NCBI GenBank assembly: GCA_964304625.1
Contig: OZ199839.1
Coordinates: 3,968,114-4,032,113 of the forward strand
Direction: 5' to 3'
Source: Kudoa neothunni
Taxonomy: Eukaryota > Animalia > Cnidaria
DNA: 64,000 nucleotides
Position 1 is the stretch's first letter. Every line of letters begins with the position of its first letter. Both the position numbers and the translations under genes were made by a program. This document shows positions 2,106 to 9,550 of the stretch, piece by piece. The notes below the pieces were generated by a model. The model did not search any database, had not been told where the DNA came from, and worked only from the letters and a program-made list of their open reading frames with translations.

Positions 2106-4202
2106 CTCTCTATCAGATGAAAAAACCACACCCTCCAAGGGGCTTTGGGATAAAAAAATACCCCATAATATTTTACATTTAACTTATGTCGAAAATTATT
2201 ATAAGGTAATGAGATAAATATGGGGAAATTCTGCCCACGGAATGTTGAGAAAACAATCAATTACTGCTTAATAATCCTCGGAGACCTGCTTCGGTAAGAT
2301 TAAGTATTATTTCGTAATAACTCGTGATTAGAACGTATAATATGTTTAACCTCATATGAAATAACGATAAACAAAAATTTCAATGACAAATAAGATATAA
2401 ATTCTATCAAAGATAATCTATGCGGACAAATGCAGAATAATGACCAAAATCCAAAACAACCACAGCGAAAAAAATCGACCATGGTGAATAATTTATTTTT
2501 GTTTATTTCTTAGTTTTGATCCAACGTGATTTTACATTTAATATTCTCTTTAATATATATGATAGTTATTGTAATCTATTATGTATCTCCTAGTCCCTCG
2601 TAATCATTTTTACAGACGATAACTAGGGCATGTAATTTTCGATTTAAACCGTCGATTTTATCAGGTTAGTTCGACGTTTATTTTTTGGGGTTGTTTCGGA
2701 AGGGGGGTCTTAATAAAAATGGGGAAAAATTTATGTGATTTAGAGAATTATATTGAGGATTGAGTTAATTAAGAAATTATTTAAAACGAATTTGTTTACA
2801 AATACCGTAACTTAGAGTTACTCAAAAAACAAAACCACATGTAGAAACATATTGCATTGCTCAAGCATCGTTCAATGATAGGATCGTTAAAGCACCTCTT
2901 TCCTGACCTCTTTTGTTATTTAGAGATCATAAAAATATAAAGATATGTCTTGTTTCAGCTTTAATGTAGTTGGATTACGATTTAAAATAATAGATAGTTA
3001 CACAAGACCTAAAAGTTTTTCCTGAATATATTGATATTGTCCTGCAGCATGTTCATGTTCGAATGATAAAACTTCGGTTGATAATAACTTACCTACATTG
3101 TTTGAAGAAAAAGATTTTAGCAACGCCAACTTTGCCGACATTATTGTTTAAACAAACCGTTGTCTTCAATCTTGGCAAAAATCTTTTCGTAGATGAGGCA
3201 TGTTTTTTTTCAGAGGAAAAAACTCTATTCTATTATAATTATATTAAAATAGAGGAATTAAAAAATAATTTTATCATATTCTGTGTAATGTTAATTTGTG
3301 TTTATTGCGTCATAAGGATGTCTGCGCATATCTGTTTATAATTTCCTTTATGCGTAAAAATGTCGAAAATTGCATGCTTTAGCTATAACACTCAATTAAG
3401 TAAAGCACCCTTTATGTATTCTAAAACTTAGTTGTGCCAACTGATTTCTGTGCATCGTCACAATTTCTTCTTAGCGGTTACCTATTATTAAATGAAGGAA
3501 TTTATACGAATGAGAATAGCATATTTAGAACAAACATTACATATTCGGTTGTAGCAACTGTTTAATGTTAAAACCAACAATAAATTATTTGACGAAGTTA
3601 ATGAATTCCTACTCTAAATTGCTTAATACATATCACACGATTCTAATTAATAATTGTACGACTAATTATCAAACTAATTATAATCTTTCATTGATGAATG
3701 CGGCCATTGTTCCGTAATTTTACCTTTAAATTATCCAAATCTTATTTATTGGGGGCTATTTATTGTTAGCGGGCAAATTATATGGATAATTTTGTTTGTT
3801 TTGAATAATAAACACTGGCGCGTTACAACGCTTGTTGAAACGACAGCTTACGATATATACGGCACCACGTAATTAATCGGATTACTTCGAATAATAATTA
3901 TTCAATTTCTCAGCATTCCTTAAGAAGAATTTTTCAAAATCTTCCATTTCGTTTTGTAATAATTTCCTGCATTCATTGAACTAAAAAAATCCAGGAGTCT
4001 TTTTGACCCCAAAGCCGTTGGAGAAAAAAATTTTGTTCGATAAGAAATAATCAATATTCATCATTAAATTTTTTATGAATTTATTTATTAAAATAGTCTA
4101 GAAGAATATAAGAAATGTTAAGTATCTAAGATAATTATTAAATATTCTATGAACAAATTAAAATCCTTTAGGGGCCTAAAATACCCTAAGCCCGTTAGAG
4201 GG
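2106..4202 (+). mobile_element. Degenerate piggyBac-family DNA transposon
   Basis: Flanked by TTAA at 2102-2105 and 4203-4206. Ends read CTCTCTATC... and ...GTTAGAGGG. Subterminal inverted repeats at ~2131-2165 and ~3993-4024. Residual transposase motif FNLGKNLFVDEACFF (ORF 3063-3341) resembles the first catalytic D region. Confidence 0.55.
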
Positions 4203-4762
4203 TTAAAGAATACGAAAGCAACCATTATATAATTTTATCATGTTAGATTACCTGCTCGTGAAACCGTAAATTTAACACAATTTGTTAACCACCACTATCT
4301 AGAGCTTTGATAACTACAAGGAATATTTATATCATACCTTAGGCAAATTATTTAATTTACACCCATATAGAGAATAGACTCAACCGAAAAATTTAATCAT
4401 TAGGTTTCGTATTATAAATTGTTTTATGGCGCTCAAATAACTAAACTTTCGTTGAAAACATAAAATGCACTGATTTGAACTGTTTTTTATTAAAATAATA
4501 CCTCTGATTTTGAGTAAATTAGCGATCTGATATTGGCGCAAGCGCTACTTACAAGTTGATGTAGGAATATTGTATTTGTGGCTCCTAAGTACTAAGGGGG
4601 TAGCTCAGAAAAGTTTAATATAACAGATTATAAAAAATTAAATCTGTACACAGCTTGTGAATAAGAGTTGTTGAGATTAAAAGTTGACACCGCACAAGCG
4701 TACATATAATTTAGGATTAAAATTTGCCACAGCAATAGGATCTTGTTTTCAGATTCATTTAG

Positions 4763-4879
4763 TGTAACGGTGGAGTTAGTTGCGCTGTCGATAGGAGAAG
4801 CCATGATAAAATATACTCGAAAAGTAATCTACCTAGATATCACTAATCTAAATCCGGTTGACGCGTGTCATCCGTTACA
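4763..4879 (-). repeat. 3' LTR (117 bp)
   Basis: Identical to 8558-8674 except one T/C mismatch (CCGGTTGACG vs CCGGCTGACG). 8-bp terminal inverted repeat TGTAACGG/CCGTTACA. Confidence 0.96.
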
Positions 4880-7413
4880 TTCCCCCCTTGGGAAGATCGG
4901 GACATATATGATTTGATGTTGTTTCTGTGGACAGTAGTTGGGAGATTGTCAATACTAATTGTATAAGTGGAGGGTCCATGTCTTTTAAGGACTACGTAAG
5001 GTCCTGACCACTTATTGGTAGCTGGGTTTTTGTAAACAACACTAGATTGGACTTGGATGGGTTTAGGAGGACTTGCATTGTTGTAGTTTCTTGAGTTTTT
5101 GGATGATGAATTGGTTAGGCTTTTGAGTGCAATTGCATGTGTGCGTGAAAGTTCACGTTTGAGATTTTTTAGGTATGACAGAGTGGTAGGAGAATTGTTC
5201 ATGTTATCATTGGGCAGAATGGGTGTGAGAGCAAAGTTGGGTTTTTTACCGTAGATAAGTTGAAAGGGAGAAAAACCAGTTGATTCATTGGTATGATTAT
5301 TATAATGGTTCACTAACATTTGGAGATGGATGTCCCATAAATTGGGTTCGTCGAGCTTCAGTAGCATATGCTTAAGAGTTCGGTTGAAACGCTCCACGGC
5401 GCCATTGCCCTGAGGATGGTATGGTGTAGTATGGGATAGCTCGATGTTGAGATCACGGCAGATTTGTACGATAATATTTGAAACGAAGTTCCTACCATTG
5501 TCGCTGTGTATACGTCTAGGCTTACCGAATTTGCATAATATTTCCTGGATGAGTTTGTCACAAATTGTCTCTGCTCTTAAATCAGCTAGTGGAATGGCTA
5601 TGGCGAATTTGGTGAAAAGATCCACACAGCAGAGTATATATCTATTAAGATTATCGGTGCGATTGAAAGGTCCAATGATATCCCATTCCATTAATTGAAA
5701 AGGGAAGGTAGCTTTTAGTGGGATTAAGTTGGATTTTTCGGAAGACCATGGATTCAATTGGCAAGTTTTACAAGAACGCACATAATTTCGGGTTTCGATT
5801 TCGTAGCCGGGCCAAAATGCGTTGTCTCGTAGCATCGAAAATGTTTTGAAGAACCCGGGATGGCCAGATTGATCATGAAATCTGTCCAAGATTTTAGCGC
5901 GCATTTGAAGTGGGATGAAAAGTTGATTGATTTCTCTATTTTCGGCTTTCAGAGTCCTCACCAAGAGGCCATCTTTGAATCGGTAAACTCTCTTACCTTT
6001 GTATTTATTTTGTTCAATGGATTTTGCGATGCTCGATATAGTTATGTCCTCTTTTTGGGCCGATATCCACTTGTCTACTGGTAGGGATAGGAAATGGACT
6101 GATATAGCATTTGATTCGCACGGTGTTCTCGATAAAAAGTCGGCGTCTACATTATCAGGGCCACGTTTGTAGACTATTTCTAGGTCGTAGTTCTGGAGAA
6201 ATAGCAGCCAACGGGATATTCTACCGTGAGAGTCTTTGATGGTTTTCAGGTGAGTTAGGGGGTTGTGATCCGTCCATACTTTGGTTCTTTTGCCGTAGAC
6301 ATATTGGTGAAATGTTTTGAGTGCATGTACTAGCGCTAGTGCTTCTTTTTCGAAGGTGGAATAATTAATTTCGGATTTATTGAGGATACGGCTGGCATAA
6401 CGTATGACATGTTTCTTGCCATTCACTTCCTGATAGAGTACTGATGCGATGGCTGTGTCTGAAGCGTCGGTGGAAATTGTGAAATTTTTATTCAGGTTAG
6501 GAAGACTGAGTAGTGGCGAGGATGTTAACAAATGTTTGATGTTACTTATTCGATTAATAGCTTCGGTGGATAATTCAAAGGGTTTTGTAGAAATGGCATT
6601 GTAGAGGGGCTGTGCTATGCTAGCAAAGTTTGGAATTAGGTCGCGGTAATAGTTTGCGAAGCCAATGAATGATTGGAGGCGTTTGGGTGTATTGGGAATG
6701 GGTATGTCAGCTACTGATTTGATTCTATCAGGATCAGGTGTGATTCCATCTTTTGAGATTACGAAGCCGAGATATTTGATTGACGTTACCTTATAAATGC
6801 ATTTTTTTGTGTTGGGTTTCCAGTTGAATTCTGTGAGACGCTTCATGATTAATTTGAGATGTTCATCGTGCTCGTTAGAAGAGGAGGAATAGATTAGGAT
6901 ATCGTCAAGGTAAACGTGACAGAATTTCCCAATGTAGTCATTCAAAGTTTCGGTCATGGCTCTTTGGAATGCAGATGGGGCTGTTACCAAACCAAATGGC
7001 AACACATTAAATTCGTAGTGGCCAAAGGGAGTGGAGAAAGCGGTCGCATATTTACAATTCTCGTGGAGTGGTATCTGCCAGAATCCGGATTTGAGGTCGA
7101 TTTTTGAAAAGTAGGTGGCAGAAGAGAGGGTGGAGATAATGTCATGGAGTAATGGTATGGAGAATTGTTCCGAAACTATCTGAGAGTTGAGTTTCCGATA
7201 GTCTACACAGAATCTATATTCATTGTTGCGCTTCTTGACGAGGAGCACTGGGGATGAATACGGACTGTTACTTTTACGTATTACACCATCGTTGAGCATA
7301 TTATCTATCTGCTCCTTAAAAATTGGGGAGAGGGCGAAAGGGATTTTCCTGGTGGAGATGTGAAAGGGGTTATCGGCGAATTTGAAACAGTATGGAGGAA
7401 CTTTTGCGTGATC
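4843..7413 (-). CDS. pol: pol: reverse transcriptase, RNase H and integrase
   Basis: Motifs RFCVDYRKLN, FSKIDLKSGFWQI, PFGL, YLDD, TDASD, EKEALA, DADFLSR, HHCC zinc finger (HDQSGH...CKTC), DDE core (WDIIGP, SDNG, NGAVERFNRTL) and GPY motif. The frame is open for 38 codons upstream of the ATG at 7299, up to the TAG at 7414-7416. Confidence 0.93.
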   Translation of the reverse strand, partial: DHAKVPPYCFKFADNPFHISTRKIPFALSPIFKEQIDNMLNDGVIRKSNSPYSSPVLLVKKRNNEYRFCVDYRKLNSQIVSEQFSIPLLHDIISTLSSATYFSKIDLKSGFWQIPLHENCKYATAFSTPFGHYEFNVLPFGLVTAPSAFQRAMTETLNDYIGKFCHVYLDDILIYSSSSNEHDEHLKLIMKRLTEFNWKPNTKKCIYKVTSIKYLGFVISKDGITPDPDRIKSVADIPIPNTPKRLQSFIGFANYYRDLIPNFASIAQPLYNAISTKPFELSTEAINRISNIKHLLTSSPLLSLPNLNKNFTISTDASDTAIASVLYQEVNGKKHVIRYASRILNKSEINYSTFEKEALALVHALKTFHQYVYGKRTKVWTDHNPLTHLKTIKDSHGRISRWLLFLQNYDLEIVYKRGPDNVDADFLSRTPCESNAISVHFLSLPVDKWISAQKEDITISSIAKSIEQNKYKGKRVYRFKDGLLVRTLKAENREINQLFIPLQMRAKILDRFHDQSGHPGFFKTFSMLRDNAFWPGYEIETRNYVRSCKTCQLNPWSSEKSNLIPLKATFPFQLMEWDIIGPFNRTDNLNRYILCCVDLFTKFAIAIPLADLRAETICDKLIQEILCKFGKPRRIHSDNGRNFVSNIIVQICRDLNIELSHTTPYHPQGNGAVERFNRTLKHMLLKLDEPNLWDIHLQMLVNHYNNHTNESTGFSPFQLIYGKKPNFALTPILPNDNMNNSPTTLSYLKNLKRELSRTHAIALKSLTNSSSKNSRNYNNASPPKPIQVQSSVVYKNPATNKWSGPYVVLKRHGPSTYTISIDNLPTTVHRNNIKSYMSRSSQGGNVTDDTRQPDLD
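4880..4889 (-). promoter_or_regulatory. Polypurine tract (AAGGGGGGAA) abutting the 3' LTR
   Basis: Purine run directly 5' of the TG that starts the 3' LTR on the minus strand. Confidence 0.85.
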
Positions 7414-8599
7414 CTATTTCGGGGCGATTGAACATGTATTCCCACGTACTGCAGGGAGTGTTATGGAACCATTCTGGCAGGTGATGAGGGCAGCATGTGC
7501 AGACAAAAAATCGCGACCAAGGATGCAATCTGTTACCAGATTATGACATACAACCATTCTCCATTTGAAGACCTTTCCATTTAGAGAGAATTCGACGATG
7601 CTAGTACCAATGGTTTCCATTTGCTTCCCGCCTGCGGATGTAAGACTAATTTTGTCAGGGTGCATTTCCACATCGAAGCCGTGTCTTATAATTGATATGG
7701 AAGATCCAGTGTCAATCAGAGCAGTTGCAACTCTAGTTCCGATTTCAATTGGTATTGTAAAATTTTTAGACAAGTCAAACTGCGCTGAAGAAACAAAACA
7801 CGAATAATTGGCCTCATCCGAAACAGATTCATTAAAATTGATACAGTTAATGTTATTTGTATGTTTGCTATTGCATATATATGAGAGGTGTCCCCTCTTG
7901 TGGCAGGTTTTACATATTGCAAAACCTTTGCACTCTTTGGTTGAGTGATTATTTGAGCCACATTTTTTGCAAGATCGTTTCTTGTATTTGGATTTCCTCT
8001 CGCCGTACGAGGCTGCTGCAGTGTGATTTGGAATATTTAGCTGTTCCTCAACCGATTGGATCAGCTCAGGAAGTGCTTGGGGTTTCGAAGCAACGATAAT
8101 ACGTTTGATGTACTCAGGCAACGACTTCGTGCATTGGTCCATAACTAGAGTTCTAGCGGTGTCTTCGTCGATAGAGGGTAGGGCCTTGCGAAGCAAATTG
8201 TTCACTCCGAAGCAGAATTCAGCAAAGGGGGGTGACATTGTCCCACGTCGAACTGTAGAACGATTGAAGGGACAATGCGGAAGAAGTGATAGGGCGATAT
8301 GTATTATTTAACAGCTCCACCATAAGGTTGAATGTATCCCTCGTTGGTCGGTACATATTTATACCGTTGGTCTCGATCAAATCGAGGATGGTATCTCCGA
8401 GGTACAAGGGAAAATTCCTAGCTTTGTCCAGGTCATTCCAGTTGCTAGCTAGTGCAAGGAGCATAAAAGAGCGGTGGAACTTGGCGAAGTTATCGGCGGC
8501 GCCGGTAAATTTCTTGAGTGGCGGTGGCTTAACAGAGTCAACACCCCTGTCACCAGATGTAACGGTGGAGTTAGTTGCGCTGTCGATAGGAGAAGCCAT
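7414..8599 (-). pseudogene. gag: gag-protease region, split by a 1-nt frameshift at the G6 run (8227-8232) and ending at an in-frame TAG
   Basis: ORFs 8219-8599 and 7414-8238 join (...DNVTPFAEFC...) if one C of the run is removed. Contains a capsid-like N-terminus (KKFTGAADNF), two CCHC knuckles (CKKCGSNNHSTKEC, CKTCHKRGHLSYIC) and an aspartic protease (LIDTGSSISI...ILGRDFL). Confidence 0.85.
8542..8555 (-). promoter_or_regulatory. Primer-binding site TGGTGACAGGGGTG
   Basis: Begins with TGG two nucleotides after the 5' LTR and is complementary to a tRNA 3' end ...CACCCCTGTCACCA. The primer looks Leu-like but was not verified. Confidence 0.8.
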
Positions 8600-8674
8600 G
8601 ATAAAATATACTCGAAAAGTAATCTACCTAGATATCACTAATCTAAATCCGGCTGACGCGTGTCATCCGTTACA
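8558..8674 (-). repeat. 5' LTR (117 bp), containing the gag ATG at 8599
   Basis: Direct repeat of 4763-4879, followed by the TSD TTTAG. Confidence 0.96.
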
Positions 8675-9550
8675 TTTAGAATCCTTATTAATTTTTGACG
8701 TAAATATGTCATTAAAATTCATTTAATTTTTACCTTACAATTGTTTTGTATGAATTAAAACCATCACAAAGGAACTTTTACCTCAATTGTGATTTTTTAA
8801 TAAACATAAGATGGATTTATCTAAATAATTTGACATTCCAGCTTTTTAAGGAATCCACACATTAACAATATTTATTGCGCATGCATCAAACTGATATAGA
8901 AACTTATGCGATAGAAAAATTACACTTCATCCCTAAATTCAACTGACTTTTTGTTCATAGATTTTATGATGTATGGGTGATATAAATATTGCACCACTAT
9001 ACAACACGCATTCTAAATATGTTTAAAATTATATATTAGAAAAATATTATTACTTAAAAATTAACTCTATCAACAACATAATGCAATTTAAATTATATCA
9101 AAGACGATGCATTAGCTTTTACTGATTAATGTAAGTGCGTTAGAACTAAATAAAAAATTATATACTTTTTAATGGGATAGATTTGTAACTAGTAATAAGA
9201 TATTATTGAAAAAATCATTTACGAAAAAGCAGTCAGTTACTTTAACTGAGTTCAATTTTACCATGACATTAACTTGATTTCAAGTTTTCTAATCACAATA
9301 GATTGTTATGAATATTTTAATTATGTAAAAATGATTTTCAACACTACATTTGTTGCCAACAATGTAAACAGTAATAAGTTTAATATTCTAGAATCCTGAA
9401 TTTATTAAATAATACGAGTAATTCTTAAGTTTGAAATGGAAACTAAAAACTGGGCTAAATAGGAATCGTCCGAGAATCGCAAGTTAGTCTATCAACAAAT
9501 ATCTCACCACATCTTGAGGTTTTATATTTTTAAATTTATTTATAATTTAG

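Follow-up and report, generated by a model that had tools for sequence, protein, structure and literature searches.

A compact Mag-like Ty3/gypsy retrotransposon of Kudoa neothunni with a gag-pol frame that extends into both long terminal repeats

The Mag lineage of Ty3/gypsy retrotransposons offers the closest described counterparts of the element considered here, a 3,912-bp retrotransposon found in a 64,000-nucleotide (nt) stretch of the genome of the cnidarian Kudoa neothunni (assembly GCA_964304625.1, contig OZ199839.1, positions 3,968,114 to 4,032,113 of the forward strand; hereafter the window, in whose numbering its features are given). Mag elements from Culex contain one open reading frame (ORF) in 4,078-4,993 bp, with long terminal repeats (LTRs) of 139-197 bp, a primer-binding site (PBS) of the Leu or Ser type and 5-bp duplications (PMC3286476), and those of pufferfish have a single ORF of 1,330-1,365 amino acids (aa) in 4.7-4.8 kb, bordered by LTRs of ~210 bp (PMC11117352). 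Overlaps between coding sequence and LTRs or cis-acting signals have also been described: the pol protein of the pufferfish V-clade1 elements overlaps the LTR (PMC11117352); in Ty1 the PBS is located inside GAG, so that U5 and PBS form part of the region translated into Gag, and coding sequence also harbours cis-acting RNA signals (PMC4974528); and in the group A CRM chromoviruses and the Beetle/Bingo elements of Beta vulgaris the gag-pol ORF passes the polypurine tract (PPT) and ends in the 3' LTR (PMC3059260, PMC3605345). In Myxozoa, Gypsy/DIRS1 has been reported as the only retrotransposon group retained, in a work that does not describe the architecture of the elements (2026 preprint, 10.64898/2026.02.11.705288). 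The window element is a Ty3/gypsy retrotransposon without internal non-coding DNA; rather than being a new kind of element, it stands at the far extreme of a lineage that was compact already. By comparison with the described systems it may be viewed as a Mag-like element, with a 5' design that would work like that of Ty1 and a 3' design that resembles that of CRM without its functional LTR motif. Taken together, the evidence makes it probable that the window holds a dead copy of a young, compact Mag-like Ty3/gypsy family that works in the way proposed below.

The likeness to Mag lies in the single gag-pol ORF, the short LTRs, the PBS matching a leucine transfer RNA (tRNA-Leu), the 5-bp duplications, the absence of env and chromodomain, and the small size, traits that are typical, not defining, of that lineage. 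The window element differs from Mag in being smaller (3.9 kb), in its shorter LTRs (117 bp, and 86 bp in a sister family), and in having no untranslated internal DNA, with both start and stop codons inside the LTRs. The gag AUG is upstream of the PBS both in this element and in Ty1, so that U5 and PBS are translated in both; however, Ty1 is a copia-type element (Pseudoviridae, with protease, integrase and reverse transcriptase (RT) in that order) of 5.9 kb, with 334-bp LTRs, a +1 GAG/POL frameshift and a tRNA-iMet primer. Like CRM, the element has an ORF that runs through the PPT into the 3' LTR, although the LTR-encoded part of CRM is a functional targeting (CR) motif and its LTRs are hundreds of bp long. 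Tf1 of Schizosaccharomyces pombe is a Ty3/gypsy element that, as the window element, has a single gag-pol ORF and no frameshift, but it is self-primed, with LTRs of ~358 bp in 4.9 kb, whereas the PBS of the window element matches the 3' end of a tRNA-Leu.

The element was delimited by sequence analysis and repeat search at positions 8674..4763, on the minus strand, and is a complete LTR retrotransposon. Its 5' LTR (8558..8674) and 3' LTR (4763..4879) are direct repeats of 117 bp each that differ by 1 base, have TG..CA ends and an 8-bp terminal inverted repeat, and are immediately flanked by identical 5-nt target-site duplications, CTAAA, at 8675..8679 on the 5' side and 4758..4762 on the 3' side. 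The gag-pol start codon ATG (8597..8599) occupies LTR positions 76-78, 42 nt from the LTR end, so that LTR positions 76-117 are gag codons 1-14. A TGG-initiated PBS of 14 nt (8542..8555) begins 2 nt past the 5' LTR and is translated within SGDRGV, the frame across the LTR end, the 2-nt spacer and the PBS reading ...STVT-SGDRGV.... Gag and protease are encoded at 7417..8599 (a disordered N-terminal tail, a two-lobed capsid, two CCHC zinc knuckles and an aspartic protease), and RT, RNase H and integrase, the latter with an H2C2 zinc domain, a core and a GPY/F-type C-terminus, at 4846..7413. The Pfam matches along the frame are zf-CCHC, retroviral protease, RVT_1 (5e-37), RT_RNaseH (8e-36), Integrase_H2C2 (1e-16) and rve (6e-16), and the Gag model matches retroelement capsids; the resulting order, Gag(CCHC)-protease-RT-RNase H-integrase, is that of Ty3/gypsy (Metaviridae) elements, and it is accompanied by all the other marks of this group: LTRs, target-site duplication, and a tRNA-complementary PBS and a PPT adjoining the 5' and the 3' LTR, respectively. 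Neither a chromodomain nor env was detected with Pfam along the element frame.

At its other end the frame reads through the PPT (4880..4889, AAGGGGGGAA), which adjoins the 3' LTR and is translated as QGGN, an arrangement shared with a sister family (family B; the family of the window element is called family A). Positions 1-34 of the 3' LTR encode the last pol residues and a TAG stop (4843-4845) occupies positions 35-37, which leaves LTR positions 38-75 (38 nt) as the sole part of family A that is never translated. Two lesions interrupt the frame in the window copy: a frameshift in gag at 8219..8238, where the frames 8599-8219 and 8238-7414 overlap, and a stop in the pol frame between protease and RT (7414..7416). 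The initial annotation had described an element of 3,912 bp with 117-bp LTRs and a gag ATG (8599) lying 42 nt inside the 5' LTR, a frame that reads through the LTR end and the PBS and, through the PPT as QGGN, stops 37 nt into the 3' LTR (4843), and, once two lesions are repaired, a 1,251-aa polyprotein over ~96% of the element; every coordinate checks, the reading through both signals was confirmed in translation, and the open frame is present in other copies. The GC content of the element is ~40%, compared to 26-30% in its flanks.

Relatives were searched in the 40.26-Mb assembly (G000), where a six-frame protein search found dozens of gypsy pol matches with 33-40% identity, with open frames of ~1,070-1,300 aa. 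One of them, family E (L101, C1:7043600-7048400, minus strand), is 3,915 bp long, has 86-bp LTRs, a GGAAG duplication and 35% pol identity, and encodes a 1,247-aa ORF from an ATG 25 nt inside the 5' LTR, directly preceded by TATAAA. The closest pol matches found outside this genome in a database search have at most 39% identity. Among the elements of other genomes, a gypsy element of Thelohanellus kitauei (GCA_000827895.1; L102:1421-5565 and L103:1421-5565), which carries no annotation beyond the product name 'Pol polyprotein from transposon 17.6', has 36% pol identity and is 4,145 bp long. It resembles the window element in its tiny LTRs and in one ORF, of 1,331 aa, over 96% of the element; it differs in that the LTRs are of 61 bp, that 20 nt separate the LTR from the ATG, which comes immediately behind the PBS, and that the stop codon overlaps the PPT without entering the LTR. 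The flanks of its two copies show a 4-bp match in one and none in the other. Three further elements from ENA assemblies have LTRs of 132-213 bp, a total length of ~5.0-5.2 kb, a tRNA-Leu PBS and a gag ATG immediately after the PBS. Because the gag ATG of the relatives directly follows the PBS, no member of this clade has an untranslated leader, and the lineage in this genome has moved its start codon across the PBS into the LTR.

The end of pol differs between families. Family A and two of its relatives (A' and A'', described below) have the stop codon at LTR positions 35-37 and family B has it at positions 23-25; it lies 23 nt before the LTR in family E and falls inside the PPT in the T. kitauei element. 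The 12 residues of the pol tail encoded by the LTR show a ratio of non-synonymous to synonymous differences per site (pN/pS) of ~0.9. By this ratio the tail is not under constraint at the protein level, and it is read not as a functional domain but, more probably, as integrase C-terminus that runs on neutrally until the first stop in U3. A conserved and functional LTR-encoded C-terminus of the kind present in CRM group A was not found, since the tail contains no Pfam chromodomain and the position of the stop varies between families.

How unusual this architecture is depends on the relatives with which it is compared. In the initial annotation it was set against Ty3/gypsy elements in general, with LTRs of several hundred bp and an untranslated leader after the PBS, a background that makes it look exceptional but turned out to be too general, as the nearest relatives have their ATG right after the PBS and LTRs of 61-213 bp; the single ORF with short LTRs of Mag, the PBS within GAG of Ty1 and the ORF running into the 3' LTR of CRM were already known (PMC3286476, PMC11117352, PMC4974528, PMC3059260, PMC3605345). 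The strongest alternative follows from these comparisons: the element would be an ordinary Mag-like member, and the overlaps between ORF and LTRs would be neutral by-products of short LTRs and of a start codon beside the PBS, not an adaptation to a reduced parasite genome, which the initial annotation had put forward as a possibility. The relatives speak for it, with their ATG placed right after a tRNA-Leu PBS, and so do the wandering pol stop (-23 nt in family E, in the PPT in T. kitauei, +25 in B and +37 in A, relative to the LTR), the lack of constraint on the LTR-encoded pol tail, the published Mag elements, which share the single ORF, the Leu/Ser PBS and the 5-bp duplications (4.1-5 kb, LTRs of 139-211 bp; PMC3286476, PMC11117352), and the presence of an equally compact element in T. 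kitauei, the genome of which is of ~150 Mb. Against it, no fewer than five to six families of this genome have converged to a size of 3.87-3.92 kb, below those of the Mag elements in the same two publications, and the ATG, once moved into the LTR, has been conserved and kept under constraint. With evidence on both sides, we consider this alternative to have nearly even chances of being correct.

A limited literature search, without Repbase, found no published description of an autonomous element that is as small as this or combines both overlaps. It is conceivable, though we would not presume it, that no autonomous LTR retrotransposons known are smaller than the gypsy families of this myxozoan type, which measure 3.87-3.92 kb and have LTRs of 86-131 bp (61 bp in T. 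kitauei). If so, a full U3-R-U5 with promoter, R, poly(A) and integrase attachment (att) functions would be contained in 61-117 nt and would otherwise overlap coding sequence, and nature would offer, in these families, a minimal model of what LTR retroelement replication requires in cis. The element bears on the compression limit of an autonomous LTR retroelement: its LTRs have a third to a tenth of the usual length, and the polyprotein frame takes in nucleotides of the PBS, of the PPT, of both att ends and, probably, of R and the poly(A) signal. With several families in one genome, a relative in another myxozoan and copies of evidently recent origin, it lends itself, as a natural system, to defining how little promoter, R and U5 an LTR needs. 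There is also a consequence for annotation: default LTR finders, which require LTRs of at least 100 bp and elements of at least 4 kb, would miss much of this group, and the missed elements could bias claims of a near absence of LTR elements from myxozoan genomes.

The ATG in the LTR is very likely the real gag start, as suggested by its conservation, by the constraint on the codons that follow it and by the position of the capsid. An LTR ATG whose frame continues through the same PBS and the 2-nt spacer before it occurs in family A, in A' (an 83% relative, seen in the 3' LTR of L007), in A'' (a diverged solo LTR, L020), in B and B' (L011 and L010, with 65% nt identity), in D (L019+L100) and in two contigs from other public samples (L108, with 60% Gag identity, and L109). 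The distance from ATG to LTR end is 42 nt in A, A' and A'', 36 in B, 42 in B', 39 in D, and 36 and 42 in the contigs, all length changes among these eight being multiples of three; including family E, about nine lineages have the LTR ATG, and a decayed copy of family C carries ATA at that place. Comparison of A with A' over the 14 LTR gag codons gave 6 synonymous and 3 non-synonymous differences (pS 0.55, pN 0.096; pN/pS ~0.17), and the never-translated LTR middle is only about half identical between the two. Both the conservation of the ATG among copies and the selection on its 14 codons, proposed at first as checks on the idea, thus came out in its favour.

The position of the capsid is informative because, in an alignment of Gag N-termini, the motif that opens it (KFxG..D..F..F.LLA.A..W) begins at about residue 28 in family A, upstream of the next methionine, which is residue 46 and lies inside this motif, and outgroup Gags start 3-15 residues ahead of the same motif. 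An AlphaFold model of residues 1-270 of the Gag of another copy, built on a 26-sequence alignment (mean predicted local distance difference test score of 82), shows residues 1-27 with low confidence and residues 30-190 as a nine-helix two-lobed domain, whose top fold matches in the PDB are dArc1, PNMA2, Arc and the capsids of murine leukaemia virus (MLV) and human immunodeficiency virus (HIV), with a Foldseek probability of ~1 and E values of 5e-3 to 1e-1. On this model the LTR end, the spacer and the PBS would encode a floppy N-terminal tail of Gag, which could tolerate nucleotides dictated by cis-acting signals.

According to the competing view, which we regard as improbable, the LTR ATG is unused: transcription would start downstream of it, with the AT-rich block GTATATTTTATC that directly precedes the ATG (8602-8611, LTR positions 64-73) acting as a TATA box, Gag would be translated from a later codon and the 14 LTR codons would be an apparent extension. 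All lineages have such a block, of the TATAAA or TTTAAAA type, 0-3 nt ahead of their ATG, and a stretch of 135 nt contains no further ATG in any of the frames, a property that would also fit a leader. This view does not account for an ATG, a frame and multiple-of-three length changes conserved over about nine lineages, nor for the low pN/pS of the LTR codons, and the next methionine is within the conserved first-helix region of the capsid, past the KFxG motif that the outgroups translate. In family E, moreover, TATAAA is 25 nt before the LTR end and, if it were a TATA box, transcription starting 25-30 nt after it would begin at the very end of the LTR or past it, and strand transfer would have no R to work with; a poly(A) signal fits better. 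A poly(A) signal in R is more likely than a TATA box for the AT-rich block.

With gag starting in the LTR, the proposed working of family A would be as follows. The genomic RNA would start within the first 75 nt of the 117-bp LTR, since the RNA start would have to precede LTR position 76 and the poly(A) site would have to follow the start, or no R would exist. Translation would almost certainly proceed from the ATG at LTR position 76 through the rest of the LTR, the 2-nt spacer and the 14-nt PBS, which matches tRNA-Leu(AAG), the nucleotides from ATG to PBS being doubly used, as they would also code for the ~27-residue disordered Gag tail ahead of the capsid. Intact copies, which have no frameshift or stop between gag and pol, would produce a single 1,251-aa polyprotein, whose integrase frame passes the PPT and ends at the first U3 stop in the 3' LTR. 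Promoter, R, poly(A) and packaging functions would have to be located in LTR positions 38-75 or overlap coding sequence, as in Ty1, and the AT-rich block before the ATG could be a poly(A) signal within R that is ignored near the cap, as in some retroviruses.

Several points weigh against this proposal. The pN/pS of the LTR-encoded gag codons was estimated from 14 codons only, and the affiliation with Mag, made on shared traits, is presumptive. In family A the AT-rich block could be read as a TATA box, and transcription would then start downstream of the ATG. Of transcripts, which would map the presumed start and poly(A) sites, none was seen: three metatranscriptomic runs from 2026 under the same species label gave 0 reads on positions 4600-8850, either because the element is silent or because the parasite is rare in the samples, and the contigs with the closest public relatives of this Gag derive from genomic DNA instead of transcripts and are uninformative on the start site. 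Finally, no unusual RNA folding was detected in the 5' 250 nt (z -1.0, compared to -0.7 in a pol control). The suggestion that replication signals are overprinted on coding sequence can be upheld for the PBS and the PPT, both of which are translated; the ordinary 5' folding leaves an overprinted packaging structure without positive support.

A search of genome DNA found five full-length copies of family A with at least 99.7% identity, each with a different 5-bp duplication. The LTRs within any one of them are 0-1 base apart, and a duplication flanks every copy examined. An uninterrupted frame of 1,251 aa from LTR ATG to LTR stop, 96% of the element, is present in three of the four other full-length copies, which greatly exceeds what would arise by chance, and the frameshift (8219-8238) and the stop (7416-7414) are private to the window copy. 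As near-identical copies have duplications of their own and open frames exist elsewhere, family A is, judging from its copies, young and recently mobile; the window copy, given its private lesions, is dead, as the polyprotein cannot be made from it. That the internal stop is instead a programmed read-through signal setting the Gag:Pol ratio, as in gammaretroviruses, is refuted by the copy comparison, for the stop, despite being in frame with pol, is missing from all four other full-length copies and sits after the protease, not at the gag/pro boundary.

Apart from the full-length copies, two rearranged copies of family A, both with matching duplications, and at least three solo LTRs with duplications were found. 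One rearranged copy (L006 + L012, C2:2171395-2179503; AAATC duplications) is broken near element position 3705 by an unrelated gypsy element with 35% pol identity and an open frame of ~1,318 aa. The other (L009/L008, C1:6340284-6343453; GAAAC duplications) has lost element positions ~1116-1846, with ~10 nt of overlap at the junction, which points to an internal deletion derivative. Where copies differ in their LTRs, the changes are single and private, and comparing them did not reveal the U3/R/U5 borders.

The tRNA assignment of the PBS comes from a search with a pattern anchored on the T-loop, in which the only exact genome match with a tRNA-shaped 3' end was a tRNA-Leu(AAG) gene (C2:3778347; L087:1501-1582), to whose 3' end plus CCA the PBS is complementary over 14 nt. 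A genome-wide search for the PBS complement as a 13-nt pattern with at most 1 mismatch returned element copies only and no tRNA, and none of the 38 tRNA genes recovered with Rfam RF00005 had a 3' end matching the PBS. tRNA-Asp was considered as primer and rejected, its match being of only 8 nt, located in the anticodon loop and attributable to chance. The sister families have the same PBS, with a match of up to 16 nt, and family E has a different one, TGGCGCAGTAGC.

A region of ~270 kb of C2 (~5.29-5.56 Mb) holds five elements (L002, L005, L010, L011 and L019+L100), which belong to families A, B, B' and D, with B' and B arranged head to tail, and this cluster may be a transposon-rich island. 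Besides three contigs of 11-17 Mb, the assembly has a fourth, of ~18.2 kb, which may be the mitochondrial genome.

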